From the NCBI GenBank assembly GCA_964247055.1, contig OZ176051.1, positions 8,804,001 through 8,868,000 on the forward strand: a DNA stretch of 64,000 nt, read 5' to 3'. Shown one piece after another: positions 5,590 to 64,000 of this stretch (its first letter is position 1; the number at the start of each line of letters is the position of its first letter). The notes beneath the pieces were generated by a model, which saw only the letters and a program-made list of their open reading frames with translations, was not told the DNA's origin and did not search any database. Position numbers and translations under genes: made by a program. The DNA comes from Paragordius varius (taxonomy: Eukaryota; Animalia; Nematomorpha).

Positions 5590-5811
5590 TGATAGGAAAA
5601 TTATCAGTAATATCATGGTGCATTTAAAAAATACATACACTTTTATGGTAGGTGCTACATATCAGAAAATGGCAAAATTTCCGCTTAAATAAAATTTTTT
5701 GGGGAAAGCTAGAGGCTTCATTCCATCACTAAAATATATTATACACTACGTATACAGTTTGCATTTTAATGGTTGCTTAACTATAATTAAGCGATTCGCA
5801 ACACAGTAGTG

Positions 5812-8523: not shown

Positions 8524-8904
8524 CAGTTGTGTATGGAAAAAACAACAAAATGTTAAATAAACAACAACTTTTTTCTTTGTTTCCATATACTAAGTTGCGA
8601 ATTGTCAACTATGGTAGGATATAAGCAACCATCAAAATGCATCGGCAAAACAATATTTTCAAAAAATTTAATTTTCAGATCTGAGTTCTGAAAGCCCCAA
8701 ATTTTTATGAAATGCGATAATCATCTTAAAATAAACGCAGATATGCCGGGATTGCGAGATAAAAATTTTAAATATAGGCTAAATTTTAATATCAACTAAA
8801 ATTATTTATTAAAAAATGCCTACTTAAGTCAAAAGATTAATTTTTAGCAACCTGTTGAACGGTACCTCACACTATTGTGAGTCATTGGAAACGGTTTAAA
8901 AATG

Positions 8905-10941: not shown

Positions 10942-11322
10942 TATATTATAAAAACAATGTAATTTAATGCTGGTGAACATTTCTATCACCTCAGATTAAA
11001 TTATTTGTTCGTCTTCAATTATGTTAAAGAAGTTTTGTGTTTTTTTTTACAAAAATTTACCCAATTGAGGCATCCTTTAAATTAAAATTCTCAATCTATA
11101 GAAATGTTCACCTCATTGAATTATATAGAAAAAGTTTTTTATAATATCAAGCGTTTCTAAACTATTTATATAATGACTAAATAGTATGAAATACGCTTTT
11201 ACAAAATTTTGCTAAAAATTAAACTTTTATAAATAATATGCATTTTTAAATAAATAATTTTAGTTGATATCCAAATTTTACATTATTTATAAATTTTATC
11301 GCATCCCGGCACATTTGCGTAA

Positions 11323-12433
11323 CATTCGATTTAAATTGGGGTATCTAAATATTCCAGACAATATTTAAATTGATATTTTTAGAAAACTACTGAAAGAAAC
11401 GGCTCCAATTTAAATTTATGCTTCTATCCTAATAAAAATTATATAAATACGCCAAAATATCTAAATAATATTTAGTTTTGGAAAAAAAGTTCCGTATGAA
11501 ACTAATTGGACGCCATTTTTATTTTACAATTTTCAAAATATTGTGTTTAACACTTGGATACATCACATCATTTTAGTTCTTCGATTCAAAGGTAGTTAAA
11601 TACCCCAGGCCTGTTTAAAAATAAATTAAAAAATATGGAAGGAATAAAAGGCATAAATGCACTTATATAACATTAATTAACCGAAATATATAAAAAATTT
11701 TATTCAAAAATACTTGATATTACTTATTTTAAGCTAAAACCGAAGGGTAAAAAGTTAGTAACGTGACATGTGTGCAATGGTAAAATTGAAAATACAATAA
11801 AAACCGCTTTTTCTATTTCTATAAATGTAATTTAAATGAAAAATTAGCTTTAATTTTACCCTTAAAACTAAATGAAGACTTTATTTTGCAAAAATTTTGT
11901 AAAATAAAAATGGCGTCGAAGTAGTTTTACATGGAACATTTTTTTCAAAACACAATTTTATATAGAAATTTTGGCATATTTTTTTTATTGGATAGAAGCA
12001 TAAATTTAAATTGGGACCGTTTCCTTCACTAGTTTTTTAAAAATCCAAACTGAAATTAAGTCTGGGGTATTTAGATACCTCAATTTGCGAAGTGTTAATT
12101 GATTCTAAGCCTAAAATTAGATTTACTTAAATTACATTTAACATTGATATAAACAGAAAAAGTGGTATATTTTGCATTATTTTTGTATTTTGCTTATGCA
12201 CACATGTCATCTTGGCTATATTTTTACCTTTCGGTTTTACTCCTGAATAAGTAATATATATTTTTGAATAAATTTTTTTTTAAATTTTGGTTCATTAATG
12301 TTATATAGGTGCAAACTTTTGCCATGATTTAATTTATTAAATATTTTTTAAAATATTTATATTTAAACAAGTCTGATCCATCTAACTACCCCAATTTGAA
12401 TCAAAGGACTAATGAATGCGTTGTATCCAAGTG
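11323..12433. mobile_element. piggyBac-family MITE (~560 bp) containing a second copy of the same family
   Basis: Ends (AA)CATTCGATTTAAATTGGGG... and ...GTATCCAAGTG|TTAA (12434-12437) match the termini of the piggyBac elements at 44105 and 52116. Confidence 0.7.
11551..12094. mobile_element. piggyBac-family MITE, nested copy
   Basis: TTAA|CACTTGGATAC ... GCGAAGTG|TTAA, with a TTAA TSD on both sides. Confidence 0.8.
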
Positions 12434-14094
12434 TTAAGAGAACTAGGCAAGATTATTTTTAATATTGTTTTGCTTTTTATATACAGTTTATGATTTATTT
12501 CAATATTTTTGGAATGAAGCCTCTAGCCTACACCAAAAAAGTTAATTTTAAAATGTGCTCAAATTTTGTCATTTTCTGATACGGAGCACTTACCACAAAA
12601 GTCTACCTATTTTTTTTAAATTCTCTCGTAAGGTAAAACTAAAAGCACATGATAATTCTGATACATTTTCCTATCAGAATATGTATATTCATTTTATATT
12701 TTTTGTGGACACTTTATAATGACAAGATAATTTCTAATAAATGTTAGGGAAAAAATCAGACATCGATGAGTCCATAGCTATAAAAAAGTTAATTTAATAA
12801 CTTTTGCATTTTCTGTCCTTTTGCTTAATTTATTTATTGTAATTTAGCCATAGAATCCAAATTTTTAAAGTTTTTAAACATGCGAAATGTACCATTTGCA
12901 CTTCAAAAGTATCCTTGAACACTTCCGGTTGGTCCTTGAACAATTTGTCCTTTAACTTTTTGTTTTTAACATTTATCAGTCTTTTAACCTATTTTCTCTA
13001 TTTATTATAAACTATATATCAATATTAATTTTAAATCATTCAAAAACTGTATAACTTATTCATTTCCTGAAATTATTTCATTAGATTTTATTGTACATAT
13101 TTGCTGAAATTAATATTTATTTTAAATCAATTGTTTTTATTTTGGTTGCAGTTGTCTCTGTAAAAAGATATAATACTTATTAGGCAAATAAAGTTATATT
13201 TAAATTAAAACGACCATATAATATGTTATTTACTAGATTAAGCTTTAAGGTACAAAACTCCCCCGATATATTATAGCCAATATAAAAATGGAAGCGTAAT
13301 GAAGGCACAGCCCGCTGGTGTTTTTAGTATAAAAATAAATAAATCTATTTAATAGGATTTTGTTGTATTTTATGGTAACTTCCCAAAATTTAATGATATT
13401 CAAATTATAATCACTCTGGGATATAACCCTAAATGGTAATAGAGTGTTACAAAATTTAAATAATTAATTCTGGTTCTGTTGTTATTTACCACAAAACTTA
13501 TCTTTAGATGTAGGCTACGAAAGTCACAACGTTTTTGCTCTTTCAAGAACTGCAACAAATTTTATGCTCTTGTCTAGATGTTACAAATCTGTAAAAATAT
13601 AAGCGTTTATATCTAATACAGGAGAACAATGTTTGATAATTAAATTAAATAAAATAACTTTCATGTTATCGACAAGATTAAGTTATGGGATATAAAACTA
13701 CCCCATGAATCCGGACAAAAAAATTTATTGATGTTTAGTTAGTATTTGTTTATATTTTCATTTATTTAATTTCCCTTGTTTAGGTAATTTATATAAACAA
13801 TAGCACAAATATAGCAATAACACATATTTACAGAATATTTGTTTACACTATATTACTTAATGCTTTAATTTTATTAATTTAAAACATAGAATTTATATTA
13901 ATGCCTCCGGTTATATTTTTGGGTTCGTAGTCACACCCAAAAATTTATGTTAATTACTCAATTTCTTTTTCATAGAATGCACATAATCAATAGTATAGAC
14001 AAAAGATCAATTAAATCTATAAATAATTTACGTATGTTACATATGTAGCCCTAAGCATTCATTTGTATTGCATTGTAAACCGCTTTTTAAACTA

Positions 14095-41811: not shown

Positions 41812-42543
41812 GATGATATTGTGCCTCAAGATTGCGAAAACTTTTTTTGGAGTGCGGTAAGCCTTGGTACAAAACCAAATTATTTCTCATAACATCATCG
41901 TCTGGGTTGTGAAGATAAAAGGTGTAAGCATGCGATATTGCGGAATCAATATGACCTATCTGGCAAATACATATATATATATATATATATATATGTATAA
42001 TAAATTCAACCATTCATAAAAAACAAATTAATGCATAATATATATGTTCGATTATTTTTATTTGACACAAAACATTGAGGATTATCTTTTTTAATTAAAA
42101 TAAGCATATTCTAAACCTAAAATTTTTTAGGTAAAAATGTTTACTTTGAAATAACAATACTGTAAATATTCATGAATTTTGTGATTTGAAATCAAATCAT
42201 CTGTAGCTTCATGGGGTACTAATGGACGATGTAAAAATATTTGATTACGACACCGAACTAAGCACAATGTTTCATTAAGTAAACCAAAGTAAAATGTATA
42301 TTCTTCAAAAATATTATCATCCTCATATAAACACGCCGAATAACATTTCAATAAAGTATCTTTAAAATATTTGTAATCTTCTAAAGCACGACGCATAAAT
42401 GAAATACAGTGTGGCCAATTTTGATCATAATAAGATTCCACGCCTCGTTTGTATAATACATGGTAAGTTACATCGGGATAATCAATTAATGCAAAAATAC
42501 ATTGAAAAAATAATATAAGCAAAATTGTCATACCAAATAGCAT
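37833..42543 (-). CDS. CRTAP: Cartilage-associated protein / SC65 (leprecan family, no dioxygenase domain); complement join(42145..42543,41810..41959,39568..39739,38489..38889,37833..38129)
   Basis: Signal-peptide-like N-terminus. Leprecan motifs YKRGVESYYDQNW..MRRAL, CxxxC pairs, YLQYCYFK, AYTFYLHNPDDDVMRNNL, NWLEAIDYFEEAL, HYHYLQYSYYK, FVPRQEVLDY. All intron phases are consistent. CRTAP versus P3H4/SC65 orthology is unresolved. Confidence 0.85.
40170..40440 (-). pseudogene. Penelope-like retroelement GIY-YIG endonuclease fragment
   Basis: Minus translation AYKVTCEYG*DIGT...KSSIAEHCWKENRNVSFDNI resembles the PLE VYxIxC..YIGxT...SAxAEH motifs. Confidence 0.65.
40670..40880 (-). pseudogene. 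Penelope-like retroelement reverse transcriptase fragment
   Basis: Minus translation DGLMRPIVPTKNSSLYSLAQHLAEYLQTFLKNELKNSFEFID, then a frameshift to LLISLDVESL, matching the PLE RT motifs RPIV..Y.LA.YL..KNS..F and SLDVESL. Confidence 0.72.
41370..41575 (+). pseudogene. 3' fragment of an RTE-like non-LTR retrotransposon
   Basis: WAGHI...KSGRPHTSWLNTITKDL matches the WxGH..GRP..W.D...DL C-terminal motif. It is followed by a (TGA)n-like tail near 41563. Confidence 0.65.
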
Positions 42544-42607
42544 ACACTCATAATTTTAAATTTATTACTGCTAGCTTATAAGAAATTATAATAATAAAAT
42601 ATATTTG

Positions 42608-43404
42608 TTAAATTTCAATATCATCATCAAATGTTTCTTCAGGAAAATCTCCAACAATCACACATTCAGGTCTAACAAAACCTCCATATTTATTATCGCA
42701 AACAAAATATCGTTTTCCATTTACGCTATTATATTTTTAGAAAATAAACCTTCCATCATTTTTCCCCAATGGCTCATCATATTTAACTCCTACCCAAACT
42801 CCAGGCTTGAAATCAGTGTTTCCTGCAATGTTTTTAAAAAATAAACCTGTGTACATTATAGTTCCAAGTTTTGTTAGACCATTTATAATAATTTTACATC
42901 TATCACCAATGTTCATGTTTTTTAAAAGATTAATTTTATTAGAATCATTCTTATCACCGCTTATTTTGTTATAGCCCATTTCAGCTAGGAATTTCCTAGC
43001 AGAATCTAAAATATAATATAAAAATACTGGGCCTATTTGAGTATTCTTGATCTGATATTTCAAGTTTGGGAATAGCGTTTAAGTCATCATATATACCTTT
43101 TTTAATCGTATTATCAGTAACCTTATATAAAAAGTGTATAAACTTCTATATCAATATTTTCTATCGTATCGGGTATGTAATCAGCCAATGTTTTAGTAAT
43201 ATTTAAATCGTCAAACCAAATAGTACCATCTTTTTTCAATATTTTGATTTGCATATTATCTAAGGTAGCGCCTGTGATAAAAACCAATTTTTCCTGATCA
43301 AATTAATATAAAACTACTTTAAGCTGATTAATTGTCAGATTTCTTTCAACCCTTTTGTTATAAAAATTGTTAGAAAAATTGGTCCGTATATCGAGTGATA
43401 ACAT
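42608..43404 (-). CDS. TBCB: Tubulin-folding cofactor B (Ubl + CAP-Gly); complement join(43318..43404,43144..43293,43028..43121,42847..43005,42750..42822,42608..42725)
   Basis: Spliced product LTINQLK|[10 protein letters not shown]|[17 protein letters not shown]|NSARKFL..GTIMYT|[24 protein letters not shown]|[27 protein letters not shown] aligns to TBCB. This needs five GT-AG introns of 24, 22, 22, 24 and 24 nt. The start could instead be the in-frame ATG at 43431. Confidence 0.93.
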
Positions 43405-43867
43405 AAGGAGAAAAGACTGTAAAATCGTCATATGATTTCGGATAAAAATTTGTTGATAACAACCGTCCCAATAAAAATATCGTTTATACCGGGAAAACAA
43501 ATTATTTTAATCAATAATACTTAATATATGTGGACGTGATATTCGCTGATATCATCCATGTCTTTGCAAAATTTAAATCATTTATATATATTAAAATTTT
43601 TGGTTTTTAGGGTAGTTTTGTATTCACGGAGTTTTAACATTTTGTTAAATATCCATTACATTTTGGGCTGATTTTATATCCCAGAGCTTAAAGATATATT
43701 TAAATGTATTAAAGGTTGTTTTCCGAAAATTTAATTATCAACTATCTTGTCCAATTATTTATAAAAATGGTTAATATTTTCAGTTTTCTAATTCCTTGAA
43801 CAGATAGTAAACGGCTCCATCAAAATTTTTTACAGTCCGTTTAAATTTAAACAAATAACAACATTAA

Positions 43868-44100
43868 CACTTCGATTCAAATTAAGGTATCTAAATACCC
43901 CAGTAAATTTGAGTTAGGATTTTTAAAAACTACCGAAGGAAACAGTCCCAATTTAAATTTATGCTTTTATCCTAATAAAAATTATATAAATATGCAAATT
44001 ATCTAAATAAACTTTTGTTTTGAAAAAAAAGTTCCAGGTCATACTACTTCGACGGTATTTTTATTTTACATAATTTTTGCAAAATATCGTCTTTTTATTT
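43868..44100. mobile_element. Half of a piggyBac MITE (CACTTCGATT end), cut at a TTAA by piggyBac copy A
   Basis: TTAA|CACTTCGATTCAAATTAAGGTATCTAAATACCCC followed by MITE internal sequence up to the TTAA at 44101. Confidence 0.7.
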
Positions 44101-45348
44101 TTAACACTTGGATTCATCACATTCACTTTAGTCCTTCGATATAAATTGGGGTAGTTAAATACCCCAGGCCTTTTTAAAGCAAATAATTTACTAAACACCT
44201 ATTGTTTTTAAGTTCTATCGCTTATTTTATATTTATTAATGCCTAATCAACTAAATACAACAGGATATTTACATTTTAATTCAAGTCACAACATGCTTCA
44301 GACAATCGATTTACAAATATCTATTATTTATGTTTAGCATCGCCATAACAGAGAGAAAATATCTTTAAAAGTAAGTTTTTGCAATTTATAGGCTTATAAA
44401 GACATATACTTGAATAACCTTATGTAAGATATTGGACAGTTATTGAATTCCGAGACGCAACTATAAAATTAGTCTTATAAATTTTGTAAAGAGATGTGCT
44501 TAAGCTGAAAACATACCACCTACTTTCTGAAGTAAATTTTACATTTAAGTTTACTAAAAAATAGAATTAATATCATGAAAGAAACAGAATCATATACACC
44601 AAGATGGTTTTGTCAACAGGTCATCAAAATTTATATAAATTATGATCTCCCAGAATTACAGAATAATGTTTTATTTAATGCTTTATATCTAATTATGTAT
44701 CTTTTTTATTCTTTGATATCAAATAAATTAAGCATTTTATTTTTTAGAAGTATGTTTATTATTCAGGTCAGTTAAACTCAAACCCCAGCCCGGGCATCTT
44801 ATTTCAATGCTATAAATTATTATATTATTTTTGTGTTTGTTTAAAAAATAATGCAATCTTTCTTAATTCTAAACCTTTCCATAAAATTTATGTGGTTTTG
44901 CTCATATTTTGATAATCAGATTAATCAAAATTGGTGAAAATTGCTATGTTATTCAAATTATGTAATATTTATCGGCATTATATTGTCATCGGTAAAATAT
45001 ATATTCGGCTAGTTGGTGAGTATTGAAGATTATACGATGGATAATCACATTCCGATTAACTGGATCAGTTATATATGTTTATGAAATTTAATCTCCACAC
45101 ATTTTATTTAAATTATTTTCATAGTTTATGCAAACAATTCAACAGCTAGCTCAACATTAGTAAACTTATCTCATAAAAGAATTATGGAGATAACAAATAC
45201 AAGAGACTTTCCTTTTGAAACAACCTTTTCAATAAACATATTTTAAGTCATGAATGTTGACTATGTGCTCAAGTTCAGAAAAAAATGATAATAAAAGTTA
45301 TTTGAATACTCATTTATTAACGTTTTATATAATATACAATATAAAAAT

Positions 45349-46891
45349 TCAGCAATTATTGCAATAAATTATTGTTTTTCTGTGGTTTTTGCACACCGCA
45401 TTTTGGCATACTTGGCAAAATATCACGGATTTTTTGTCCACAGATCTTGGACACAAATAGCACCTTGTATGACATATAAGTATGTATACCTTTTTGGCAC
45501 ATTAATATTATTCTGTTCTAAAATTCCCATCTTTTCTAAAGCCGAAAAAAATGATTTTGTTAACATTTTTTGTTTTTCTTGCAGACCCGAGGCAAGTTTT
45601 TTACTGAATTTCGTCCAAAAATAATCGTCGAGATAATTTATTCGTCCGATTATAATTGTGAATAAAATGTGGGCATTTACGCCTGCAATGTCAATAATAT
45701 TGAAAAACAGGCGTAGTGGCCATCGCTAACTGCCTCGTGATGCATACTACCTAACATGTAAACGGTTTTCTTTGGTCGCCTTATAGGCTACTAGAGTTAG
45801 ATCTTCATGAAATCCATGAACTGAGGCATAAAGATCGCTTTTTTTAAATCAAAATCACAGGGTATTTCTGGCTTGTTTGATCTCAATGTGCCTAATTAGA
45901 GATTATAAATATTTTTCATTATTAGACAAAAAATTATACCCACTAACGTCAACTGTTTATTCAATAATTCCTGTGCTAGTGGTATCGAAGTGAAGTAATT
46001 ATCAGTAGTTATGTTGTAACCACTGTGAAGGGGTTTCGTTAACTGTATAGCAACATTTTTTGCTAAGTTTTTACAAACGGATCCATCCGTCGATTTACCG
46101 GTGTATAAAACGCCATTATAACAATAACCATTTTCGGAGTCGCACAATAAAACAATTTCAAACCATACTTATCGGGTTTATTTGGATAAATTCTAAAGGA
46201 GCGATTCCCTATAATAAATAAAAAATATATACCCTTAAGACCAAGCAATTGTTCATCGATTGTTAGGTAATAACCAGGATCATATAAATTTCTTGAAGTA
46301 TAAAAAGGTTCCATATTTCAGATATCGCTGCACCTTTGACAAGATTCTAGTGTCTCTTGTTTCTTTATTATCAAAACGGAGATGTTTAAATATATTAAAA
46401 AATCTGGTGTAGGTCATGGTTGCCCCATTAAATGGATCAGATCTTTGATCGTAAAACAATTCTCTCAAAGGGACCATGTATGATTTGCGGACGCCCATAG
46501 CAATCAAGATACCTAAATATTTATATAGATAATATACCTAAAAAGGCATCAAATTCCTCCATATTCAAATAATTCCACGTGTCCGATTTGGCGTATTCAT
46601 TGGTATAGTTTATGATTAAATTTTTAATGTCATTAGTTATGATAGAATTGAATATCGTAAGGGGGTCCTGGATAATTCATTGCCCGGGATTAGGATTATG
46701 TTGGATTGCTTGATTTTAGTAGGATTTAAGTGTTTAATCCAAACAAATGATTTAGAATAAGCCAAATTTTCTATTATATTAAAATCTAAATAAATTTTTT
46801 TATACCTGAATCCGAAGATGAGGAGTCACTATCTACATCATCACTTAAAATATCTCGGCTACTATCAAAATTATCAGAAAATTCTTCCATA
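45349..46891 (-). pseudogene. piggyBac transposase pseudogene with micro-introns (copy A)
   Basis: Reverse complement of 52426-53970 with the same frameshifts; it lacks the CCA codon of the PGP motif. Confidence 0.88.
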
Positions 46892-47172
46892 ACAAAAAAA
46901 TAAATTCTTCGTATCAAAAAATACTTTAAATGATATCTTTGCAGGAAGTGGGATTGTGCAAACTTTAAAAATAAAATGTATTCTGGTAAAAAAATTCAAA
47001 AATAATTCTGGCGCCAACCAATTTGAGATGAGAATTTTTTTCAAAACTGAATTTTATTTGGATATTTTGGTTTAATTATATATTTTATATTGGGATAGAA
47101 GCATAAATTTAAATTAGGGCCATTCTATTGGGTAGTTTTTTAAGAATACCAATTTAAAAATGGTCTGAGGTA

Positions 47173-48592
47173 TACCATTTCCCAGTCTAAATAAACGTTT
47201 TCCCAGTCAATCGAAACGTTTTCCCAGTCAATCGAAACATTTTCCTAGTCAATCGAAACGTTTTCCCAATCAATCGAAACATTTTCCCAGTCAATCGAAA
47301 CGTTTTCCCAATCAATCGAAACATTTTCTCAGTTAATAAAAACATTTCCCCAATCAATAAAAACGGTTTTATTTTTGATGATAAATATCAAAACAAGATA
47401 TAAAAATAACTTTTAACCATTAGCGTAATATTGGGATATTATTTTTTTATAGAAACACAATTATTTAATGACAATTTTCCAAGTATATTCCAGTGGACAA
47501 TCATTAAGACTTATTCTTTTAAAATTATATTTTTGGAATTTGAGATGTTTTTAAGATAATATTTTTTATTTTATTTATGGTTCGCATTATTTGCGGCTAA
47601 CTAACAAAATCTATAGTTACGGATGAAATATTAAAAATAAAAATAATATACCATTTTTATCTCAAAGGTCATTTAACACTTCATATTGGATCTTAAACAA
47701 TAAATTTTACCCTAATTTTATAATATTTATCATTTGGTCATCGGGTTCCCAACGCGGCGTGCCGAGTATCTCTGTGCGGCCCACTAAAAATTTAGAAATC
47801 CATATGCAAAAATATGCCCACAAAATCTTATTAATATTCATATTTCTTACGAATTTCTCTGAATGAGGCTAGTAAATTGGTAACAAATTAAAAAAATTAC
47901 TAAATTTTTGTATTTTACAGTCTTATGTCTAATCGAAAAATTATTTATGAAATATATCGAATGCGGAACACCGTGCTTTTTGAGTAATGTGGCCCGCGAA
48001 GCCATTCGGTTGGACACCTCTGTTTTAGTCAAATATCTTATTAAATATTTTTAAATTTAGATATTTTTTCCGACAGTATTTTTATGGAAAAACTTGACAT
48101 TGTAAAAACTGTTTTGAAGCGTTCGGCAAATATTAATGCGAACCATCAATAAAATAAAAAAATCTTAAAAACATCTCAAATTACAAAAGATATAACTTTT
48201 AAAGAATAAATCATTAATGATTGTCCACAGGAATATACTTGAAAAATTGTCATTCAATAATTGTTTTTTCATGAAAAATAATATCCTAATATTACCCTGA
48301 TAATTGTTAAAAGTTAATTTTATGTCTTGTTTTAATATTTATCATCAAAAATAAAACGGTTTTTATTGACTGGGAAAACGTTTTTATTGATTGGGAAAAT
48401 GTTTTTATTGACTGGGAAAATGTTTCGATTGACTGGGAAAACGTTTTGATTGACTGGGAAAATGTTTCGATTGACTGGGAAAACGTTTCGATTGACTGGG
48501 AAAATGTTTCGATTGACTGGGAAAACGTTTCGATTGATTGGGAAAATGTTTCGATTGACTGGGAAAACGTTTATTTAGACTGGGAAATGGTA
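47173..48592. mobile_element. Foldback-type MITE (TA TSD, Tc1/mariner-like target) with ~420-bp arms containing 21-bp tandem repeats
   Basis: GG TA|TACCATTTCCCAG ... CTGGGAAATGGTA|TA TTTAG. The empty site GGGGTATTTAG in copy B shows a TA duplication. Repeat unit is CCCAGTCAATCGAAACGTTTT. Confidence 0.85.
47739..48022. mobile_element. hAT-like MITE in the loop of the foldback element (second copy reversed at ~49228-49505)
   Basis: Ends (C)GGGTTCCCAAC ... GTTGGACACCTCTG, with a GCGGCCC subterminal motif, like the hAT at 5812. Confidence 0.55.
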
Positions 48593-48744
48593 TATTTAGA
48601 TACCCCAATTTGAATCGAAGTGTTAATGTGACCAGATATTTTGAACTTTGACGCAGTACAAAATTAAAACATACTTTGCCTGTTTTTACACCATCGGTGT
48701 AGTTTATTACACAGTTTCCACAAAAAATATCCTGATGAAATATA

Positions 48745-50076
48745 AACCATTTCCCAGTCTAAATAAACGTTTTCCCAGTCAATCGAAACATTTTTCCAAT
48801 CAATCGAAACGTTTTCCCAGTCAATCGAAATGTTTTCCCAGTCAATAAAAACATTTCCCCAATCAATAAAAACGTTTTCCCAGTCAATAAAAACGGTTTT
48901 ATTTTTGATGCTAAATATCAAAACAAGAATATAAAAACAACTTTTAACCATTATTAGCGTAATATATGGAGATAATTTTTAATTAAAAACACAATTATTG
49001 AATGACAATTTTTTCAAGTATATTTTAGTGCACAACCATTAATGACTTATTCTTTGAATGTTATATTTTTGGAATTTGAGTTAAGATAATATTTTTTATT
49101 TTATAGATGGTTCCCATTAATATTTGCGGAACGCTTCACAATAGTTCTTAAATATGTCCGGTTTGTCGATAAAAATACTGTTGGAAAAAATATCAATATT
49201 TAATAAAAAGGATATTTGACTAAAAACAAGGGTATCCAACTGAATGCTTCGCGGGCCGCATTTTTAACTCAAAAAGCACACGGTTCCCCATACGGGTATT
49301 CACATATTTTTTCGATTAATAAGACTGTAAAATACAAACACAATATAACAAATTTTTTTAATTCATTACCAATTTAATAGATTCATTCATAATAATTGCG
49401 TAAGAAATATGAATATTACTAAGATTTTGGGGCATATTTTTGCATATGGTTTTCCAATTTTTTTGCTGCCCGCACAAAGATACTCGCCGCCTTAGGCTCC
49501 CAACCAAATTTTAAATATTATAAAATTAGTGTAAAATTTATGTTTAAGATCCAATATAAAGTGTTAAATGACCTTTGTGATAAAAATAGTATATTTTTGT
49601 AAATTTTATTAATTCCTCCGTAACTATAGATTCTTTAGATTAGCCGCATATATTAATGCGAACCATCGATAAAATAAAAACTCAAATTCCAAAAATATAA
49701 AATTTAAAGTATAAATCAATGATTGTGCACTGGTATATACTTGGAAAAATTGTCATACAATAATTGTGTTTTTAATTAAAAATAATATCCTAATGTTACG
49801 CTAATAATGGTTAAAAGTTATTTTTATATTCTTGTTTTGATATTTATCATCAAAAATAAAACCGTTTTTATTGACTGGGAAAAAGTTTTTATTGATTGGG
49901 AAAATGTTTTTATTGACTGGGAAAATGTTTCGATTGACTGGGAAAACGTTTCGATTGACTGGGAAAATGTTTCGATTGACTGGGAAAACGTTTCGATTGA
50001 CTGGGAAAACGTTTCGATTGATTGGGAAAATGTTTCGATTGACTGGGAAAACGTTTATTTAGACTGGGAAATGGTA
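48745..50076. mobile_element. Second copy of the 21-bp-repeat foldback MITE, loop in opposite orientation
   Basis: TA|AACCATTTCCCAG ... CTGGGAAATGGTA|(TA)n, with the same arms and 21-bp arrays as 47173-48592. Confidence 0.82.
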
Positions 50077-50521
50077 TATATATATATATATATATATATA
50101 TTTTTTCTGATAGGAAAATATTAGGATTATCATGGTGCTTTTGGTTTTTTTAAGAAAGTTATTTACCATTTTGAGGTATAATATGGCAAAAGGTGCTAAA
50201 TTTTTTCAAATATATTTGTTGGTTAAAGCTAAATGCTTTATTTCAAAAAATATCACTAAAATATAACATAAACTACAGATAAAAGCACAACAATATTTTT
50301 AAAAAATTTAAATTTTTAAATGTAAGCTCTGAAAGTCCCAAAATTTTTGGCATTTTTCAAATGGGCGTCTCTTTTGAAACAAACGCAAAAATTCCGTTGT
50401 GCATAATTTTAAATATATGCTAAATTTTGATATCAACTATATATTTTTTTTTAAAAATGCATACTTTCAAAAATTTAATTTTTAGGAAAATTTTGTTGAA
50501 GCATACTTCATACTATCTTAA

Positions 50522-51096
50522 CACTTCGATTCAAATTGGGGTATCTAAATACCCCAGACTAAATTTAAATTAAATTTTTTAAAAAACTACTGAAGGAAAC
50601 GGTCCCAATTTTAATTTTGCTTCTATCCTGATAAATATTATATAAATATGCCAAAATATCTTGATAAAATTTAGTTTTGAAAAAAAAGTTTCACCTCAAA
50701 CTACTTCGACGCCATTTTTATTTTACAAAAAATTTGCAAAATATCGTCTTCCTTTAATTTTAAGGGTAAAACTAAAGCTTATATTTTATATATATTACAT
50801 CTAACATTAATAGAAATGAAAAAGCGGTTTATTTTGTATTATTTTTTAATTTTACAATTTGACACATGTCACGTTGACTAAATTTTTACCTTTCAGTTTT
50901 AGCTCAAAATAAATAATATCAAGTATTTTTGAATAAATTTTTTTATATATTTCGGTTTATTAATGTTATATAGGTGCAAAATTTTGCCATGGTTTCGATT
51001 GCTTCCATACTTTTTAAACTATTTGATTTTAAACAGGCCTGGGGTATCCAACTACCCCAATTTGAATCAAAGGACTTAAATGAGTGTGTTGTAGTG
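50522..51096. mobile_element. piggyBac-family MITE
   Basis: TTAA|CACTTCGATTCAAATTGGGGTATC ... GTTGTAGTG|TTAA. Confidence 0.8.
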
Positions 51097-52111: not shown

Positions 52112-52425
52112 TTAACACTTCGATTCAAATTGGGGTATCTAAATACCCCAGACCATTTTTAAATTGGTATTCTTAAAAAACTACCCAATAGAATGGCCCT
52201 AATTTAAGTTTATGCTTCTATCCCAATATAAAATATATAATTAAACCAAAATATCCAAATAAAATTCAGTTTTGAAAAAAATTCTCATCTCGAATTGGTT
52301 GGCGCCAGAATTATTTTTGAATTTTTTTACCAGAATACATCTTATTTTTAAAGTTTGCACAATCCCACTTCCTGCAAAGATATCATTTAAAGTATTTTTT
52401 GATACGAAGAATTTATTTTTTTGTT

Positions 52426-53970
52426 ATGGAAGAATTTTCTGATAATTTTGATAGTAGCCGAGATATTTTAAGTGATGATGTAGATAGTGACTCCTCATCT
52501 TCGGATTCAGGTATAAAAAAATTTATTTAGATTTTAATATAATAGAAAATTTGGCTTATTCTAAATCATTTGTTTGGATTAATCACTTAAATCCTACTAA
52601 AATCAAGCAATCCAACATAATCCTAATCCCGGGCCCAAATCAATTATCCATGACCCCCTTACGATATTCAATTCTATCATAACTAATGACATTAAAAATT
52701 TAATCATAAACTATACCAATGAATACGCCAAATCGGACACGTGGAATTATTTGAATATGGAGGAATTTGATGCCTTTTTAGGTATATTATCTATATAAAT
52801 ATTTAGGTATCTTGATTGCTATGGGCGTCCGCAAATCATACATGGTCCCTTTGAGAGAATTGTTTTACGATCAAAGATCTGATCCATTTAATGGGGCAAC
52901 CATGACCTACACCAGATTTTTTAATATATTTAAACATCTCCGTTTTGATAATAAAGAAACAAGAGACACTAGAATCTTGTCAAAGGTGCAGCGATATCTG
53001 AAATATGGAACCTTTTTATACTTCAAGAAATTTATATGATCCTGGTTATTACCTAACAATCGATGAACAATTGCTTGGTCTTAAGGGTATATATTTTTTA
53101 TTTATTATAGGGAATCGCTCCTTTAGAATTTATCCAAATAAACCCGATAAGTATGGTTTGAAATTGTTTTATTGTGCGACTCCGAAAATGGTTATTGTTA
53201 TAATGGCGTTTTATACACCGGTAAATCGACGGATGGATCCGTTTGTAAAAACTTAGCAAAAAATGTTGCTATACAGTTAACGAAACCCCTTCACAGTGGT
53301 TACAACATAACTACTGATAATTACTTCACTTCGATACCACTAGCACAGGAATTATTGAATAAACAGTTGACGTTAGTGGGTATAATTTTTTGTCTAATAA
53401 TGAAAAATATTTATAATCTCTAATTAGGCACATTGAGATCAAACAAGCCAGAAATACCCTGTGATTTTGATTTAAAAAAAGCGATCTTTATGCCTCAGTT
53501 CATGGATTTCATGAAGATCTAACTCTAGTAGCCTATAAGGCGACCAAAGAAAACCGTTTACATGTTAGGTAGTATGCATCACGAGGCAGTTAGCGATGGC
53601 CACTACGCCTGTTTTTCAATATTATTGACATTGCAGGCGTAAATGCCCACATTTTATTCACAATTATAATCGGACGAATAAATTATCTCGACGATTATTT
53701 TTGGACGAAATTCAGTAAAAAACTTGCCTCGGGTCTGCAAGAAAAACAAAAAATGTTAACAAAATCATTTTTTTCGGCTTTAGAAAAGATGGGAATTTTA
53801 GAACAGAATAATATTAATGTGCCAAAAAGGTATACATACTTATATGTCATACAAGGTGCTATTTGTGTCCAAGATCTGTGGACAAAAAATCCGTGATATT
53901 TTGCCAAGTATGCCAAAATGCGGTGTGCAAAAACCACAGAAAAACAATAATTTATTGCAATAATTGCTGA
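52426..53970 (+). pseudogene. piggyBac transposase pseudogene with five micro-introns (copy B)
   Basis: Motifs IPGP, EEFDAFLG|ILIAMG, RFFNIFKHLRFD, YLTIDEQLLGLKG|NRSF, NKPDKYGLK, ITTDNYFTS, LVG|TLRSNKPEIP, FFNIIDIAGVNA, and Cys-rich tail PKR|CYLCP..CQVCQNAVCKNH..CNNC*. It has several frameshifts and appears to lack the YN..GVD third-Asp region. Confidence 0.9.
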
Positions 53971-55213
53971 ATTTTTATATTGTATATTATATAAAACGTT
54001 AATAAATGAGTATTCAAATAACTTTTATTATCATTTTTTTCTGAACTTGAGCACATAGTCAACATTCATGACTTAAAATATGTTTATTGAAAAGGTTGTT
54101 TCAAAAGGAAAGTCTCTTGTATTTGTTTTCTCCATAATTCTTTTATGAGATAAGTTTACTAATGTTGAGCTAGCTGTTGAATTGTTTGCATAAACTATGA
54201 AAATAATTTAAATAAAATGTGTGGAGATTAAATTTCATAAACATATATAACTGATCCAGTTAATCGGAATCGGTTGTGATTATCCATCGTATAATCTTCA
54301 ATACTCACCAACTAGCCGAATATATATTTTACCGATGACAATATAATGCCCATAAATATTACATAATTTGAATAACATAGCAATTTTCACCAATTTTGAT
54401 TAATCTGATTATCAAAATATTAGCAAAACCACATAAATTTTATGGAAAGGTTTAGAATTAAGAAAGATTGCATTATTTTTTAAACAAACACAAAAATAAT
54501 ATAATAATTTATAGCATTGAAATAAGATGCCCGGGCTGGGGTTTGAGTTTAACTGACCTGAATAATAAACATACTTCTAAAAAATAAAATGCTTAATTTA
54601 TTTGATGATCAATAAAAAAGATACATAATTAGATATAAAGCATTAAATAAAACATTATTCTGTAATTCTGGGAGATCATAATTTATATAAATTTTGATGA
54701 CCTGTTGACAAAACCATCTTGGTGTATATGATTCTGTTTCTTTCATGATATTAATTCTATTTTTTAGTAAACCTAAATGTAAAATTTACTTCAGAAAGTA
54801 GGTGGAATGTTTTCAGCTTAAGCACATCTCTTTACAAAATTTATAAGACTAATTTTATAGTTGCGTCTCGGAATTCAATAACTGTCCAATATTTTAAATA
54901 AGGTTATTCAAGTATATGTCTTTATAAGCCTATAAATTGCAAAAACTTACTTTTAAAGATATTTTCTCTCTGTTATGGCGATGCTAAACATAAATAATAG
55001 ATATTTGTAAATCGATTGTCTGAAGCATGTTGTGACTTGAATTAAAATGTAAATATCCTGTTGTATTTAGTTGATTAGGCATTAATAAATATAAAATAAG
55101 CGATAGAACTTAAAAACAATAGGTGTTTAGTAAATTATTTGCTTTAAAAAGGCCTGGGGTATCCAACTACCCCAATTTATATCGAAGGACTAAAGTGAAT
55201 GTGATGAATCCAA

Positions 55214-56242
55214 GGGTCGGGTGATAAAATTTTTTTGACTTGACTTGCAAGTTTTTCAAGTCATGGCTTGCTTTCATGTGATAAAAAAAATTTAACATTA
55301 CACGACTTAAGTCAAGCAAGAAAACTTGATAAGGAGAAAAAATCATATGTTAAAGTAAAACTTAAAGATTTTGCAAGTGTGGTGTAGGGCACACTTGACA
55401 GATTTAAAAATATGGATAAAATTATTTTGGAAACTATTTATATAAAAAATTTAGGTTTTATATGTAATTCAAACCTTTGTTAATGCTATAAATTGTTAAT
55501 TTGATAATTTTTGGCTAATTAATCTATTCATTGGGTGGATACAAAAGAGGATAAATTTATAGAAAAACTCTGTTAATATTAAATAACATGGCACATAAAA
55601 ATATGCTAAATATATCAATTCCGTGACCGCAACAAAATTGGATTCTCGAAAATTTCTTAAAATTAATAATTAAATATTAATCTTGTAAAATTTCAAATCT
55701 TCGTTTACTAAAAGCAAAACTTATTTATCCAATGTAAAGAATTTATTTCATCATAAATTTATTTCGAATGTAATGTTTATAATCAATTAAAAAGAAATTA
55801 TGTTATATTGTATAAACATCTTCCCATTATATTTGCAACTAGACTCCAAACAAAATAAGTAGTGTGGTATAATAATGGAAAGTGTTTTAAGGGCGAATGG
55901 CTTCATCAATCTAAAATTATTACCAGCTCACAATTTAGAAAACTCTATAATATTATATAAGATACGTGCCAGTGAGTTTGAAAAACTTCAAAAGATGCAT
56001 ATTGTATTTTTTGTTTATTTTTTTGTGCCTTATTTCATAAATTTTAGCTGAAAATGATCAAAAAAATTTCCATAAAATTCGAATTGGGTGGCAAAAAACT
56101 GTTACATTCATAAGCAAAAGACTTGACTTAAGTGTTTTTTTTATCACCGATCTTCAAGTGTACACTTGCTGGCTTAAGTAATCTTGCTAAACTTGCCACG
56201 CTTGGCTTACAAGTCAAGTGCGACTTTTTTATCACCCCACCC
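55214..56242. mobile_element. Non-autonomous TIR element with a 3-bp TSD (PIF/Harbinger-like)
   Basis: TIRs GGGTCGGGTGATAAAA / TTTTATCACCCCACCC; TSD CAA (55211-55213 and 56243-56245); subterminal GACTTG/CAAGTC repeats. Superfamily is inferred only from the GGG terminus and the 3-bp TSD. Confidence 0.7.
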
Positions 56243-56834
56243 CAAGTGTCTTAGACTCAAGTACAGCTCCAAAACACGATTGAAACGATCAGATTTATTA
56301 AAATCAAAATATAACAAGTTTTGTTGATATGTAGCCAAAAAGTATTTAAAACTTACATTTTTTAACTATAACACTGGACAACAAATTTTTCTGCCACTCG
56401 AGTTTTTTACATTTTCTGATATTTAGTTTCATTTTAACAGTAAATCTGAAATAAAAATTATAACTCGATCGAAGAATTTTGTATAATATAATTTTTGTAA
56501 TTATGCGCCCTCTTTATCAAAATTTTACTAAAAAATGTTTTCCTTTGAAAATATACAAGTAATGCCCATTTGTAATATATCATTTGAAAGAATAATAAAA
56601 CTCTATAAAATGCCTACTAATATGTTTTACATCGACAGTTAATTTACCATATTTAAATTAATATCGTTAAAAAACTACTGAGAGAAACGACTACTATTTT
56701 AATGTCTGTTTCTTAATGTAGATTATATAAATAAGACGAAATATCTAAATAAGATTTGTTTTAAAAAACTCCATATCACACTGCTTCTACGCCATTTTTA
56801 GTTTTTTATTTACAATATTTTGTAAATATTTTAA

Positions 56835-57327
56835 CACCTGGATACATCATAATCATTTCAGTCCTTCGATTCTTATTAAGGTCGTTGGATACCCCGGGCC
56901 TGTTTAAAATTAAATAATTTAAAAAAATATGAAATGAATAAACATGGCAAATGTTTGGACATATATAACCATAATAAACCGAAAAATAAAAAAATCATTC
57001 AAAAATACTTGATATAACTTATAAGGTAAATTTAGTCAACATGTCATGTGCGCAATAGTATAATTTAAAAATATATAAAAACCGTTTTTTTTATTTTTAT
57101 CGATTGCGGATGAGATTTAAAATTAATTAGATTTATTTTTAGATTGTGCAAAGTCAATAAAAATGGTGACGAAGTAGTATGATATGGAACTTTTTTTTCA
57201 AAACAAAATTTTATTGGCTCATTTATATTTTTATCAGGATAAAAGCATTAATTTATATTGGGACCGTTTCTTTCAGTAGTTTCCTTAAGCATAGTCTGGG
57301 ATATCTAGATACCGCAATTTGAATCGA
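56835..57327. mobile_element. piggyBac-family MITE, nested copy
   Basis: TTAA|CACCTGGATAC ... GTCTGGGATATCTAGATACCGCAATTTGAATCGAA. Confidence 0.7.
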
Positions 57328-57458
57328 ATTATTTTTAAAAATTAAAGTTTATTGTTTATTTAAATCACATACATTGATAGAGAATAAGTGGTATATTGTA
57401 TATTATTTTTAAATTTCGCTAATGCACATATGTCATACTAAATTTTAAGCTCAAGTAA

Positions 57459-60284
57459 TCTATATATTTTTAAAAATAGAAAGTGGTGGCTTTGTGATCT
57501 GTTTCCGGAAAACCGTAGACCCATTCAAGTCCAAATTACGAAATATAATCATTAATGAATGCCCCGACAATAGCTTCTCCGTTTTTTTTGAATTAAGCCC
57601 CCTTCGGGCATACCCCGTGTAAAAAACGGTTTTTTTGCAAAAAGTCCACAAAAAAACGTGTCTTTGAGACAATTTTCCCGTGTTGGACCATTCGATTTCA
57701 AATGATTTTTTTTTATTTATTTCGATTGCGCCAACCATAGTCGTCTCGCTTTTTTAATTCCTCTTTTTACCCGCTCCCCCCGTAAAATGCCATTTTTTCA
57801 AAAAAAGTCCACAAAAATAATTTTTTGAATCAATTTTTCGCCCAAAGTATGAGACCGTAAAATAAGGATACCAAGTATTTCCTCTTAGAAGGCAAAAATT
57901 TTAGTTAAGCGTTTCTTTAATGATAGGTGCTGGGTAAGGAGATACCCGCTAAAAACTGACCCCTCACATAGAAATAGCGTGTCTTTGGGGCTAAATTTCA
58001 AACAACCTCTCAGGCCATAGGAGTAATAACTGCTTAAATATTACCCGTAACAAGGTGAATATTTAAACGGTTTTTTAATATTAGCCGTTAATTAGGCCCT
58101 TCACGCCCTGAAAAATGCGCCACAATAAAATGATTTTTTAATTTTGAGGCAATTTTTCCAAAAACCAATAAGAGCATATGGAATCAATTATGATTCCAGG
58201 CATTCGTAAAAAGGCAAAAATATTAATCAAGCGCTTTTTTGTATCAGCCTCTGGGTAGGGAGCTACTCGCCTAAAACTGCGCCACCATATCTAAATTGCT
58301 TTGTTTATCAGGCCATAACAATCATCACAAATAACACTGTAGTATCCTGCTTTTTCAATCTCGTATATTGTTTTGAGGAATAGACAGTTATAATCAGACC
58401 ATTAATATCATATAAGAGTCACGTAGATTAGCAATAGCGAAAAAGGAAATTGTTTCATGATTTAAAAATTATACGCTTTTCGATCTTTTTGAGATTTATG
58501 TATAATTATCAATCAGTCTTTATTGATCTTAAACATAAAATCGTATTAGTTTATTGTTTTATTATTTATTTATTTATCATATGTATAGGATATTAAAAAA
58601 TATATGGATAAAAAACATTATTTATGGTCATCTATATATTTATAAATGGAAGGTGGTGGCTTTGTGATCTGTTTCCGGAAAACCGGCCATTCAAATCCAA
58701 ATATCGAAAAAATATAAACATTAAATTAGACCCCCAGTTCGGGCCCACCCCGTGTAAAAACGGTTTTTTTTAAAAACAGAAGTCCACAAAAATCGTGTCT
58801 TTGAGACAATTTTCCGGAGAACTTGTTGAATCATTCAATTTCTAATATGATTTTTTTACTTATTTTCGATTGCGCCGAACATAGTCGGCTCGCTTTTTTA
58901 AATTGGGCCCTCTTTTTACCCGCTCCCCCCGTAAAATTACATTTTTTTCAAAAAAATTGTCCACAAAAATAATTTTTTGAATCTATTTTTCACCCAAGGT
59001 ATGAGACAGTAAAAATTCAATAAGGACTCCAGGTTTTCCCTGTTAAAAGGCAAAAACTTTAGTCGTGTGTTTCTTTTATATTTCTGGCCGGGTAAGCAGC
59101 CGCTAAAGACTGATCCGTCATATCGAAATAGTGTGCCTTTTGAGCTAAATTTCAGAAACTATCAGGCCATATGAGTTCAATCTGCGCTTTTAAATATTAC
59201 CCGTAAAAAGTCAAAAATAATTAAGCGGATTTTTTTATAAATTAGCGGTTAAATAGGCTTTCAAACGTCTTTTCTATATTAACCTCTGAGTAGAGAGCTA
59301 CCAGCCTAAACTGCGCCACCATATCCAAATTGCGTTGTTTAGGAGTTAATTTTAAAAAATCAGGCCATATAAGTTTTATAAGGGCCTGAAATATAACCCG
59401 TAAAAGGAAAAAAATTAAGTCGAGCGTTTTTTTTAAATTAGCGGTTAAGGCCCTTTACGCCCTGAAAAATGCGCTATCATTGAACTATTATTTAGTTTTA
59501 AAGCAATATCTCCAAGAAGTTATCGAAACATATGGATGAGTGATGATTTTAGGTACTTTCTATATAAAGACAAAAATTTTGCCCGACGCTTGTTTATACC
59601 TGCCTCTGGGTAAGAAGCTACATGCCAGAAACTGCGCCACTATATAGGAATTGCCTTGTTTTGGAACTAATTTTCAGTAAACTTATGCCATATGAGCTCA
59701 TTTAAAGTTCGAAACATTACACGTAACTTGGTAAAAATTAAGGCCAGGCCTTTTTTAGGACGTTTATGCCCTAAAAATACGCCATCCTATAATGATTATT
59801 AAGTGTTGAGGTATTTTTTTGAATATCCCATAAGACGATGGTCTCAAAGATGATTCCAAATATTTTCCCTATAAAGGCAAAAAATTTAACTTAGCGCTTT
59901 TTCCATATAGGCCTATGAGTAGGGGTCTACCGGTTAATTGAGACGCCATACAAAAATGGCGTGGGAGCTAATTTTCAAAAAGCTTAAGAAGCCATACAAG
60001 TTCAATAAAGGCTAAAAATATTACCCATAAAAAGTTAAAAATTATTGTAAGGCAGCTTTTTCCGTTACTTGGGGCCTTTACACCAGTAATCAATATATTA
60101 GTATGAATGCACAGTTTTGAAACTTAAATGAAGCACCGTTTTGAAAATTTTATAAGATCATAGGTATTAAATAATGTTTTGAAATATGCACATATATGGA
60201 TCTTATTGATCTCTTTTTTCAAATAGCCCCCCAGAAGTCCGAAGGACTTTCTCAGAATGCGTAGCAGCACGAGATTTACGCTAG
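57459..60284 (+). mobile_element. Composite non-autonomous Helitron (5' ends at 57459 and 58631)
   Basis: A|TCTATATATTT starts, ~160-bp satellite, and 3' end GCGTAGCAGCACGAGATTTACG-CTAG|T, the same as at 8225. Confidence 0.78.
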
Positions 60285-60676: not shown

Positions 60677-63453
60677 TCTAGAAAAAATTAAGATAGCTTA
60701 TTTTGTAACCAATAACTAAATAGTAACTGATAAAATGTTTAAAAAACTTTTAGTTTTTATTTACATGTTTTGACCATAACACAGTGTCCACAAACTAAAA
60801 CCAAGATTTAATATGTATATTCTGATTGGAATATGTACCAGGATTATCATGGTGCTTTCTTACGGAAGATTGTTATTTAAACTTTTGTTAAGTGCTCCAT
60901 AGAAGTGGCTTATGTAAATCTAGCTGAATAAAAGGTAGCTCTACCTTGAATCAGATCCATAAACACCAAAATGAAAAAGAAGTCGATGCTCTAAGATGAA
61001 GAGCTGTAATCTGAATCTGTAATGCACGACGCTATTACAAGATTAATTTAAATTGCATTAATGAAACGACCGATACCGGCACTAAAAAACATGGAAAGTG
61101 ATTTTACATACGATACTCCGTCTTACACAGCAAAATCAGTAAAAGGCATAAAATCGCTTCGGTAAAATTTTTTCCCGTATCGCTGCGCTTTACTGCAGGA
61201 TCATCTTCTATTATGTCTATGCAATGGGGCATATGCCCGAGCAGAACCTCAATAATTTTGAAGACTTTGAAGCTTAACAAATGGTTTTTAATGGGCGAGT
61301 AGAAGCCTGACAATTTTTATAAAGCATTTATTAGTTTCTACAAGCTGTTTTACCAAAAAAATGGTCTTATTACCACATCTAGTATAACACTAGACAACAA
61401 ATTTTGATTTTTTTAGTGCAATTCTTCTAAATTTATATTCATTTCATTTAAATACATAAATAGTATATCTAGAAAAAATTGGTCTAACCTAAGAACTTTT
61501 TTTATTAGGCTTAATAATTTTGGCCTTAAATTATCATTAAACTCGAAATTTTTAATATTAAAAGTTTTAGATCTAAAGCATGTATTTTATATCATTCAAA
61601 AGAGCGCAGAAGACTGAATCTTTCGAATGGAAGTTGTCATTTAAAACAATCTCTAAAAGTTATTTGGCTTTATATCAGTATAATCAACCCTAAATTAGTC
61701 AATTTTCTTAGACAAACTAATTTAAAAATCATATAAATTATTTAATATAATTATTACGGTTACATTATTATAAATTTAAAAAATCTTTAAAAAGCTTTTG
61801 GTTTCTTTTTTAAAATAACTTTTTACCTTGTGGATTAAGAATGCATAGTTATAACAATTTATATAATGGCTATAAAAGATCAATTATACCTTAACCAATA
61901 TTATAATCATTAAAATTTTGAAATTATAAGCCTTCTAAACAAATTATTTAATATTAATATGATGGTATTTTTTTGAAAAGGAAAAATTAAAAATGGCTGT
62001 TTTGAATGACATTATAGCAATAATTAATTTTTTGTTTTATCTTTTTTAGACATTCACTGCCATCTTAACAAAATTTTAGTTTTCATTAATTGGTTTAAAA
62101 AATACATCAATTAAGAAAAAGGCTCTCGCTTCGCGGGTTTGTCGCTTCCTATGTCCAATATTAACCATCTGTGTAAAACATATTAGTAGGCATTTTATAA
62201 TTTTTTATTACTCTTTCGAATATTATATAACAAATGGTCATTTTTTGTATATTTTTATTTCATATTTATTGTTAAAATGATATAAAAATCATAGTGGCAG
62301 AAATTTTTTTGTCTTTATCATTATTTATTAAATTCTTTTTTTGTAATAAGTCAAGATTGATGAAATTAACATAAATATAGTACTTTTAATTATTATATGA
62401 TTAGCATTTATTTAATTCTTGTAGATGTTTAAAATGGAAAATATATGGCAAACTTGACTTTACAGAGATTCGCGTGGAATAAGGTACTGTTTTTGATAGG
62501 TTAAAAAAATATACCGGTCTGAATCCATTTATATTCAGTCATTAGCGGACACGTATAAATGATGGCCAAAATTAAACTTATTTAACAAAAATGGTAACCC
62601 AATAGCTCATTTGAGTGATTTAAAATCAAATAATTGGAAAATTTATTATATTTTCTTACAATTTTTTATCCTTATAAGTTTTATATAATTATTTTAATTA
62701 TTTTACATCGCATGCATACATATTTTTTAAAGATTGTCCTTTTACATGCAAGTATTTAAAGCAAGCCAAATCTACTAGCCAAGTCTCATGCCTTTATTAT
62801 AACTAAAATTATACTTAAATATAAATAACCATTTTTTGTTTAATATTCAATTATCATTGAATGACATTTATATTATTTGATAATGATATATTTTACGCAT
62901 TACCTTCGTTATTTTAAATCCGAATCGTTGAGTTTTGCGCCAAAAAATTAGATAAAATATTGGCAAAAACAGCATTTTCGTTAATTTTTTCAGTATGACT
63001 CACTGAATTTTCTTAATAATTTTGCAAAAAAATATTGATTTTAATTACGATATGTTCTCATTCCAAATAAAATACTAAATTAAACGATAATGTGATTAAC
63101 TTTTATTGCAAAAAAGGTTATAATCATGAATGAGTAAAAGTATAAAAGGGCAAACATTTATCTATGTTGATTTTATATAAAATATATCTTTATTATGCAA
63201 TTGATAGATATTCCTAAACTTCTAGCGGTAATACTTTTTATATAGTGAACTTTTTAGACAATTCATGTTTCCTTTAATCATTCATTCTTTTCGACACGAT
63301 GTGTTGATGAGTTTTTAACCACGATTGGGCTTTTTTATGACAGCACACATGGTTAAAATTAATTAATATTCTTTTTTAAATATTACTATAGGATGAGTAT
63401 AAATACATTGCTAGTTTTGCTTAAAATATATCCAGATAGTAATTTACAATTAA

Positions 63454-63969
63454 CACTTGGATACAACACATTCATTTTAGTCCTTCGATTCAAATTGGAG
63501 TAGTTGGACACCACAGGCCTGTTTAAATCTAAATATTTTTAAAAATATGGAAAAAAACGAAACCATGGCAAAATTTTGCACTTATTTAACATTTATAAAC
63601 CGGAAAATATAAAAAAATTTATTCAAAAATACTTGATATTACTTATTTTAGGGTAAAACCCAAAGGTAAAATTTTTATCCACGTGACATGTGTGCATTGG
63701 CTTAATTGAAAAATACTACAAAATAATACACTTTTTCTATTTCTATCAATGCTATATGTGATTAAAATAAATAATTTGCTTAAATTATACCTTTAAAAAT
63801 AAATATAAAACTTTTTTTTCAAAACGAAGTTTAATTTAGATTTTAGCTTATTTATATAAATAGGACAGAAGCATATTTAAATTGGCACCGTTTCCTTCTG
63901 TAGTTTTTTAAAAATATTTAATTAAATTTAGTCTGGGGTATATTATATACCCCAATTTAAATCTAAATG
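63454..63969. mobile_element. piggyBac-family MITE
   Basis: TTAA|CACTTGGATACAACACATTC ... GTCTGGGGTATATTATATACCCCAATTTAAATCTAAATG|TTAA. Confidence 0.8.
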
Positions 63970-64000
63970 TTAAGGGCAGTGACATTATTATAGAAAAAAA

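Follow-up and report, generated by a model that had tools for sequence, protein, structure and literature searches.

Can a piggyBac transposon remain mobile when its transposase gene is split by several micro-introns? Multiple introns have so far been a mark of piggyBac domestication, the mobile elements being described as intronless but for the single intron of Pokey. Mobile piggyBacs are said to lack introns in the transposase domain (PMC3902484), and multiple introns are listed only for the domesticated genes PGBD5 (5–7 introns), PiggyMac (2), and TPB2 (12) (PMC5381638). Here we examined a transposase gene at 52426–53970 of a 64,000-nt stretch of Paragordius varius DNA (the window), for which a first-pass annotation had proposed that a piggyBac lineage acquired the micro-intron architecture of its host. 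We consider it probable that a piggyBac gained five short U2-type introns while autonomous in this host lineage, and that the two copies in the window, A and B, come from a decayed sub-lineage.

The element belongs to the piggyBac superfamily on the grounds of PF13843 homology, TTAA target sites, terminal inverted repeats (TIRs) with subterminal repeats, and a Cys-rich domain. Three exon pieces of copy B match PF13843 (E = 9e-7, 2e-4, and 2.5e-12), and the T. ni piggyBac structure 6x67 is also matched at the level of exon pieces (E = 7.5e-8). Copy B, whose features are on the + strand unless noted, begins at a TTAA (52112–52115), followed by the left TIR (52116–52162), which starts with CACTTCGATTCA and overlaps a subterminal repeat with a GGGGTA..TACCCC palindrome. 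The decayed transposase gene (52426–53970) has six exons and at least six frameshifts. It keeps the first catalytic Asp codon (53062–53064, in TIDEQ) and the second (53316–53318, in TTDNYF), the latter opposite the CDNWF motif of T. ni piggyBac (6x67). The last exon (53857–53970) encodes the C-terminal cysteine-rich domain and ends with the stop codon; AATAAA at 54002–54007 is, by its letters, a possible polyadenylation signal. The right subterminal repeat and the inner part of the right TIR lie at 55143–55213 (− strand).

That right TIR is split by an unrelated element of 1029 nt (55214–56242) with GGG..CCC termini and a CAA duplication, after which the terminal GTG follows at 56246–56248, with no TTAA there. 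The termini of the insertion are of the GGG(T)CGGGTGATAAAA type and its duplication is 3 nt long; it is possibly PIF/Harbinger-like. Copy A (44101–48626, − strand) is inverted relative to copy B, has TTAA at both ends, and is 99.0% identical to copy B over 3079 nt; its transposase (45349–46890, − strand) has the same five introns and lesions. In its left subterminal repeat sits an unrelated TA-flanked element of ~1.4 kb (47171–48592) with 21-nt tandem-repeat arms. This ~1.4-kb element is present in two copies, 83% identical, at 47171–48592 and ~48740–50080, each with long inverted arms of 21-nt tandem repeats. Each piggyBac copy has one terminus broken by another element. The earlier description of the transposon as TIR- and TTAA-bounded is fully right for copy A only, as copy B has a split right TIR and a TTAA on the left only. 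The element ends read CACTT(C/G)GATTCA, and the subterminal inverted repeat (45 nt, 80%) overlaps with the TIR on the left but lies at a distance from it on the right.

Five GT..AG segments had been proposed as introns of the transposase gene, and all were located in the sequence of copy B on the + strand. Probable intron 1 (52511–52545; 35 nt, or 20 nt with the acceptor at 52530) is in phase 1 within the unconserved acidic N-terminus, where a frame change is needed, and its acceptor may be 52530, 52545, or even 52608. Intron 2 (52782–52806, 25 nt, phase 1) splits the Gly codon of FLG|IL and has a 9-nt boundary repeat. Intron 3 (53087–53110, 24 nt, phase 1) is in frame without a stop. Intron 4 (53380–53427, 48 nt, phase 1) contains an in-frame stop and lies inside V-G-T. 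Intron 5 (53830–53855, 26 nt, phase 2) lies in K-R|C, where the Cys-rich domain begins. Three of the four phase-1 introns split conserved Gly codons. All five segments of copy B are identical in copy A.

The segments share a donor signal. Every one begins with GTATA after a G (5/5), as had been pointed out, and GGTATA occurs in 52426–53970 five times, at the five segment donors and nowhere else. Its mean expectation from dinucleotide shuffles is 0.48, and none of 2000 shuffles reaches five. GTATA alone is not significantly enriched in 52426–53970 (shuffle mean 2.1, P = 0.06). The contexts were also said to be mostly of the AG|GT proto-splice kind, which was not borne out, as AG|GT is found at only two of the five sites and G|G at four. 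GC content is 9% in the segment interiors vs 31–36% in the exons. In introners (intron families derived from transposons), new introns resemble one another and carry terminal repeats; by eye, the five here have only GTATA and AT-richness in common. In GT..AG ends, host-like donor, and composition, they have the properties of U2-type introns.

Each exon piece was aligned separately to a profile of 34 full-length piggyBac homologs. At introns 2–5, the flanking exons are contiguous on the profile columns with zero extra residues between them. At intron 2, columns 141 and 143 are the last of the upstream exon and the first of the next one, and the split Gly takes column 142. Read through, intron 3 adds exactly 8 residues at the R/K-G-R motif that follows the first catalytic Asp, and intron 4 adds exactly 16, including a stop, within V-G-T. 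Intron 5 falls at K-R|C on column 524 with a frame change, and the Cys-rich domain (53857–53967) occupies columns 524–558. Among the 31–34 homologs covering the columns of introns 2–5, none has an insert of 4 aa or more there. The profile comparison that the first-pass annotation called for is in favor of introns at these four sites. Its claim that removal restores canonical spacing stands for introns 2–5, but no open frame results in copy B when exon-by-exon frames are followed with the five segments removed. Judged on sequence, introns 2–5 are very probably genuine introns.

Relatives of the transposase had been taken as single-exon, and every homolog locus checked is indeed uninterrupted at these positions. 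Seven loci are single ORFs with codons continuous at the intron 3 and 4 positions, some of their contigs possibly being derived from RNA. One of the loci (L006) is an entire element bounded by TTAA and TIRs, with CACTC ends of a related kind; likely TIR pairs are also seen at L001 and L003. At an eighth locus, L001 of the mite Oppia nitens, the catalytic core is uninterrupted; the predicted introns of this locus were rejected as counterparts, being confined to the N-terminal low-complexity part. The closest known homologs are only about 55% identical. A protein homology search with a 70-aa exon piece returned nothing, and a two-row alignment of that piece with a homolog, used as the query, found distant piggyBacs only. 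The tree from this one 70-aa exon was unresolved, and so we claim no donor or horizontal transfer. With homologs this distant and a tree of this kind, gain of the introns is argued by parsimony.

Copies A and B are dead and non-autonomous. Mapping on the profile places necessary frame changes near 52980, 53022, 53170, 53478, 53552, and 53593, with further ones probable near 52625, 53685, and 53712. A deletion of ~120 nt, with its junction at 53593–53594 (+), has removed profile columns ~387–425 (about 40), including the third catalytic Asp motif (GGVD). Two of three catalytic Asp residues and at least six frameshifts leave a dead transposase, and since one end of each copy is damaged as well, neither copy is autonomous. 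The frameshifts and the third-Asp deletion are common to both copies, indicating that a dead sub-lineage was copied in trans. Assembly error was ruled out as the cause of the frameshifts because both copies carry them and contigs of other samples show 0 differences. Transposases of such a kind will be mis-annotated as dead pseudogenes.

The flanks of copies A and B differ and their similarity stops at the element termini, suggesting that they arose by transposition; segmental duplication was ruled out as their origin, as similarity ends at the element ends. The different flanks of the two copies, together with internal-deletion derivatives that keep introns 2 and 5, support that the family was mobile while carrying introns. 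Accordingly, the view of a lineage that stayed mobile, with two copies and many MITEs, is upheld for the family but not for copies A and B themselves, whose transposase is dead and whose ends are damaged. Neither is this a PGBD-type domesticated gene, which would be single copy, lack TIRs, and keep a conserved open frame; here there are two copies with TIRs and frameshifts.

Among thirteen public sequencing runs, none found to contain the stretch is recorded as RNA. The order of intron gain and decay was addressed with contigs from runs X1, X3, X4, and X5, compared over window positions 42100–47150, all of which behaved as genomic contigs. X4 and X5 are from sample S3, a different individual. 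X1 has the decayed core, identical over 719 nt, and X3 likewise shows 0 differences where it spans the deletion point. An S3 contig over copy B positions 52768–53592 differs by 17 substitutions and 17 gap letters, for a net gain of 17 letters. None of the 24-, 25-, and 48-nt segments can therefore be lacking, and introns 2–4 are present. Beyond this, the contig runs into 113 letters that do not align, beginning no more than 2 nt from the deletion point. Intron 5 is crossed by further S3 contigs that show no 26-nt gap. On the simplest reading of these contigs, S3 would have a less-decayed copy with introns 2–5 and the catalytic segment deleted in A and B. Because this less-decayed copy keeps the introns, the introns appear older than the decay. 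An intact autonomous copy with the same introns had been suggested as a check; A and B are dead, the S3 copy is a candidate, and a fully intact copy is something we infer.

In S3, a single contig covers the transposase core (window 45727–46551), at about half to two-thirds of the host single-copy depth. An insertion that is polymorphic and hemizygous, and that would hence have moved recently, may explain this, though contig depth is a poor measure. Run X3, labelled as another organism, contains this genome at low depth (about 3–6) and the decayed copy with 0 differences, and may come from an infected host or a mixed sample. Internal-deletion joints (e.g., copy B 52828–53717 and 52826–53813) leave introns 2 and 5 outside the deleted part, and no intron-matching joint was found among 15 of 197 joints. 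In the run contigs, small indels and a common substitution lie within introns 1 and 5. Contig depth, which does not equal copy number, rises from a low level over the core, through the transposase ends, to the termini, where it is thousands-fold higher. This pattern is consistent with a small number of full-length copies, more numerous deletion derivatives, and a great many MITEs.

Would such short introns be usual for this host, whose genome has a GC content of about 27%? Lying 700 nt from copy A, a TBCB-like CAP-Gly gene (42611–43420, − strand) is interrupted by five GT-AG introns (24, 22, 22, 24, and 24 nt), which makes micro-introns plausible in this host. The gene next to it, leprecan/CRTAP-like and running from near 42550 on the − strand, appears to mix short and kb-scale introns. 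The proposal that a piggyBac lineage acquired the micro-intron architecture of the host agrees with all of this, as the segments behave as host-type micro-introns, the relatives are single-ORF, and the introns predate the decay.

Other explanations deserve weighing. The segments could be decay insertions, AT-rich filler in a dead copy that is intron-like by resemblance only, as might be expected of a heavily decayed copy in a genome of about 27% GC where GTATA alone is not enriched. This we find hardly credible, since GT..AG ends occur with G|GTATA at all five segments (0/2000 shuffles), the remaining lesions are deletions rather than insertions, and the less-decayed S3 copy retains the segments. 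The introns could also be genuine without having been gained by this mobile lineage in this host: they may descend from a piggyBac clade with introns that has escaped sampling, or have been acquired in a domesticated host copy (cf. PGBD5 and PiggyMac) that was later re-mobilised. Against this stand the marks of a mobile family: its TIRs with TTAA, insertions at more than one site, and, besides deletion derivatives, MITEs that share these ends; the intron sizes match the unusual class of the host, and all homolog loci checked are uninterrupted at these positions. Such an origin is thus unlikely, even with the multi-intron piggyBac genes of the literature being domesticated (PMC5381638, PMC3902484) and no close relative having been found to polarise the change.

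A regulatory role is conceivable as well. As in the P element, where regulated splicing of the transposase is established, tissue-wise retention of intron 3 or 4 would yield an inactive or repressor protein. If retained, intron 3 (stop-free and in frame) would add 8 aa directly behind the first catalytic Asp motif. However, chance alone would put a 24-nt AT-rich intron in frame in a third of cases, and two TBCB introns of the host are likewise put at 24 nt; the switch is highly unlikely.

Returning to intron gain in an autonomous element, the following course can be envisaged. The transposase gene would have gained five short U2-type (GT-AG) introns when the element was still autonomous in the host lineage, probably Nematomorpha. 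An intact copy would be transcribed and its five introns removed by the host spliceosome. The resulting DDD transposase with its Cys-rich domain would then cut and paste TTAA-flanked elements, deletion derivatives, and MITEs, by the established cut-and-paste chemistry of piggyBac. Copies A and B, with frameshifts and the third Asp deleted, would represent a decayed sub-lineage copied in trans, their ends struck later by other insertions. Alternatively, the introns might have been longer when gained and shrunk along with host introns, to which the 35- and 48-nt ones would fit.

The manner of gain is suggested for one intron. The direct repeat at the intron 2 boundaries, from which the first-pass annotation derived intron birth by proto-splice duplication, is real and 9 nt long (TTTAGGTAT). 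Boundary repeats of introns 1–5 are 2, 9, 2, 2, and 5 nt, vs 0–4 nt for the host TBCB introns. On a small null set, a 9-nt repeat has a probability of about 0.0005 when any G precedes and of 0.014 when the sites are AG|G. Repair of a staggered break with AT-rich filler would leave such a repeat, as would duplication of a proto-splice site, and birth of the latter kind is suggested for this one of the five introns only. As a general mechanism, proto-splice duplication was ruled out, the other four repeats being 2–5 nt.

Compared with the IFP2-type piggyBac of T. ni (PF13843, DDE_Tnp_1_7), the element shares the TTAA site, a short TIR with a subterminal repeat, a longer right-end spacer, an acidic N-tail, a DDD core, and a C-terminal Cys-rich domain. 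It differs in having five introns, loss of the third Asp region, frameshifts, and at most about 55% identity to known proteins. Like PGBD5, PiggyMac, and TPB2, it has its transposase domain divided by several introns; these three are host genes that were domesticated, whereas here TIRs, TTAA, several insertion sites, and non-autonomous derivatives are found. An intron in a mobile piggyBac has precedent in Daphnia Pokey, which has one GT-AG intron of 68–84 nt confirmed by RT-PCR (PMC3575242, PMC3849761). Pokey targets 28S rDNA and has that single intron, in contrast to five introns of 24–48 nt here.

Spliced transposases are common in other DNA transposon superfamilies, as in the P element, Ac, and Tc1, with introns of ordinary sizes, whereas three of the five here are below 30 nt. 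Glomhopper, a mobile CryptonA, likewise has its recombinase mRNA spliced by the host (PMC13465315). The likeness of the present element to P, Ac, Tc1, and Glomhopper would be this dependence of a recombinase mRNA on host splicing, across different superfamilies. Introns below 30 nt have been reported in only two animal lineages, myxobolid myxozoans and Dicyema japonicum (PMC13644364). Both are parasitic, as is the lineage here, and have these introns in host genes, whereas the present ones belong to a transposon of a different animal. The literature searched, outside which most subscription papers lie, yielded no description of a TIR-bounded piggyBac carrying several micro-introns.

Five introns where all checked relatives are uninterrupted would be polarised instances of animal intron gain that can be dated, and the process might be seen midway among copies of differing age. 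Why the introns persisted is a matter of speculation, neutral fixation in a vertically inherited family and protection from silencing being equally open. In human cells, introns shield transgenes against HUSH (PMC8770142), and in C. elegans they impede nuclear RNAi (PMC5554785). We can only tentatively entertain that several unrelated DNA transposon families in this worm each gained several sub-30-nt introns while autonomous. If they did, they would test whether introns shield transposons from silencing and whether introns peculiar to one host stop horizontal transfer, and would point to active intron gain or to selection for resembling host genes, e.g., in escaping silencing of intronless RNA. 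A transposase that needs 24–26-nt introns removed would probably fail in hosts with an ordinary spliceosome. Such introns, if genuine, would tie transposons to hosts whose spliceosome handles them, cutting off horizontal transfer.

About six MITE-like copies with the ends of the element are present in the window, 68–88% identical to its terminal regions. Those with a different interior of ~220 nt lie at 11320–12440, 43864–44030, 50518–51093, 56646–57330, and 63450–63976. Some of the MITE-like copies look nested or rearranged, and one is ~450 nt upstream of TBCB. Another abundant repeat family, with internal units of ~160–500 nt, occupies 5200–10550 and 57500–59850 of the window.
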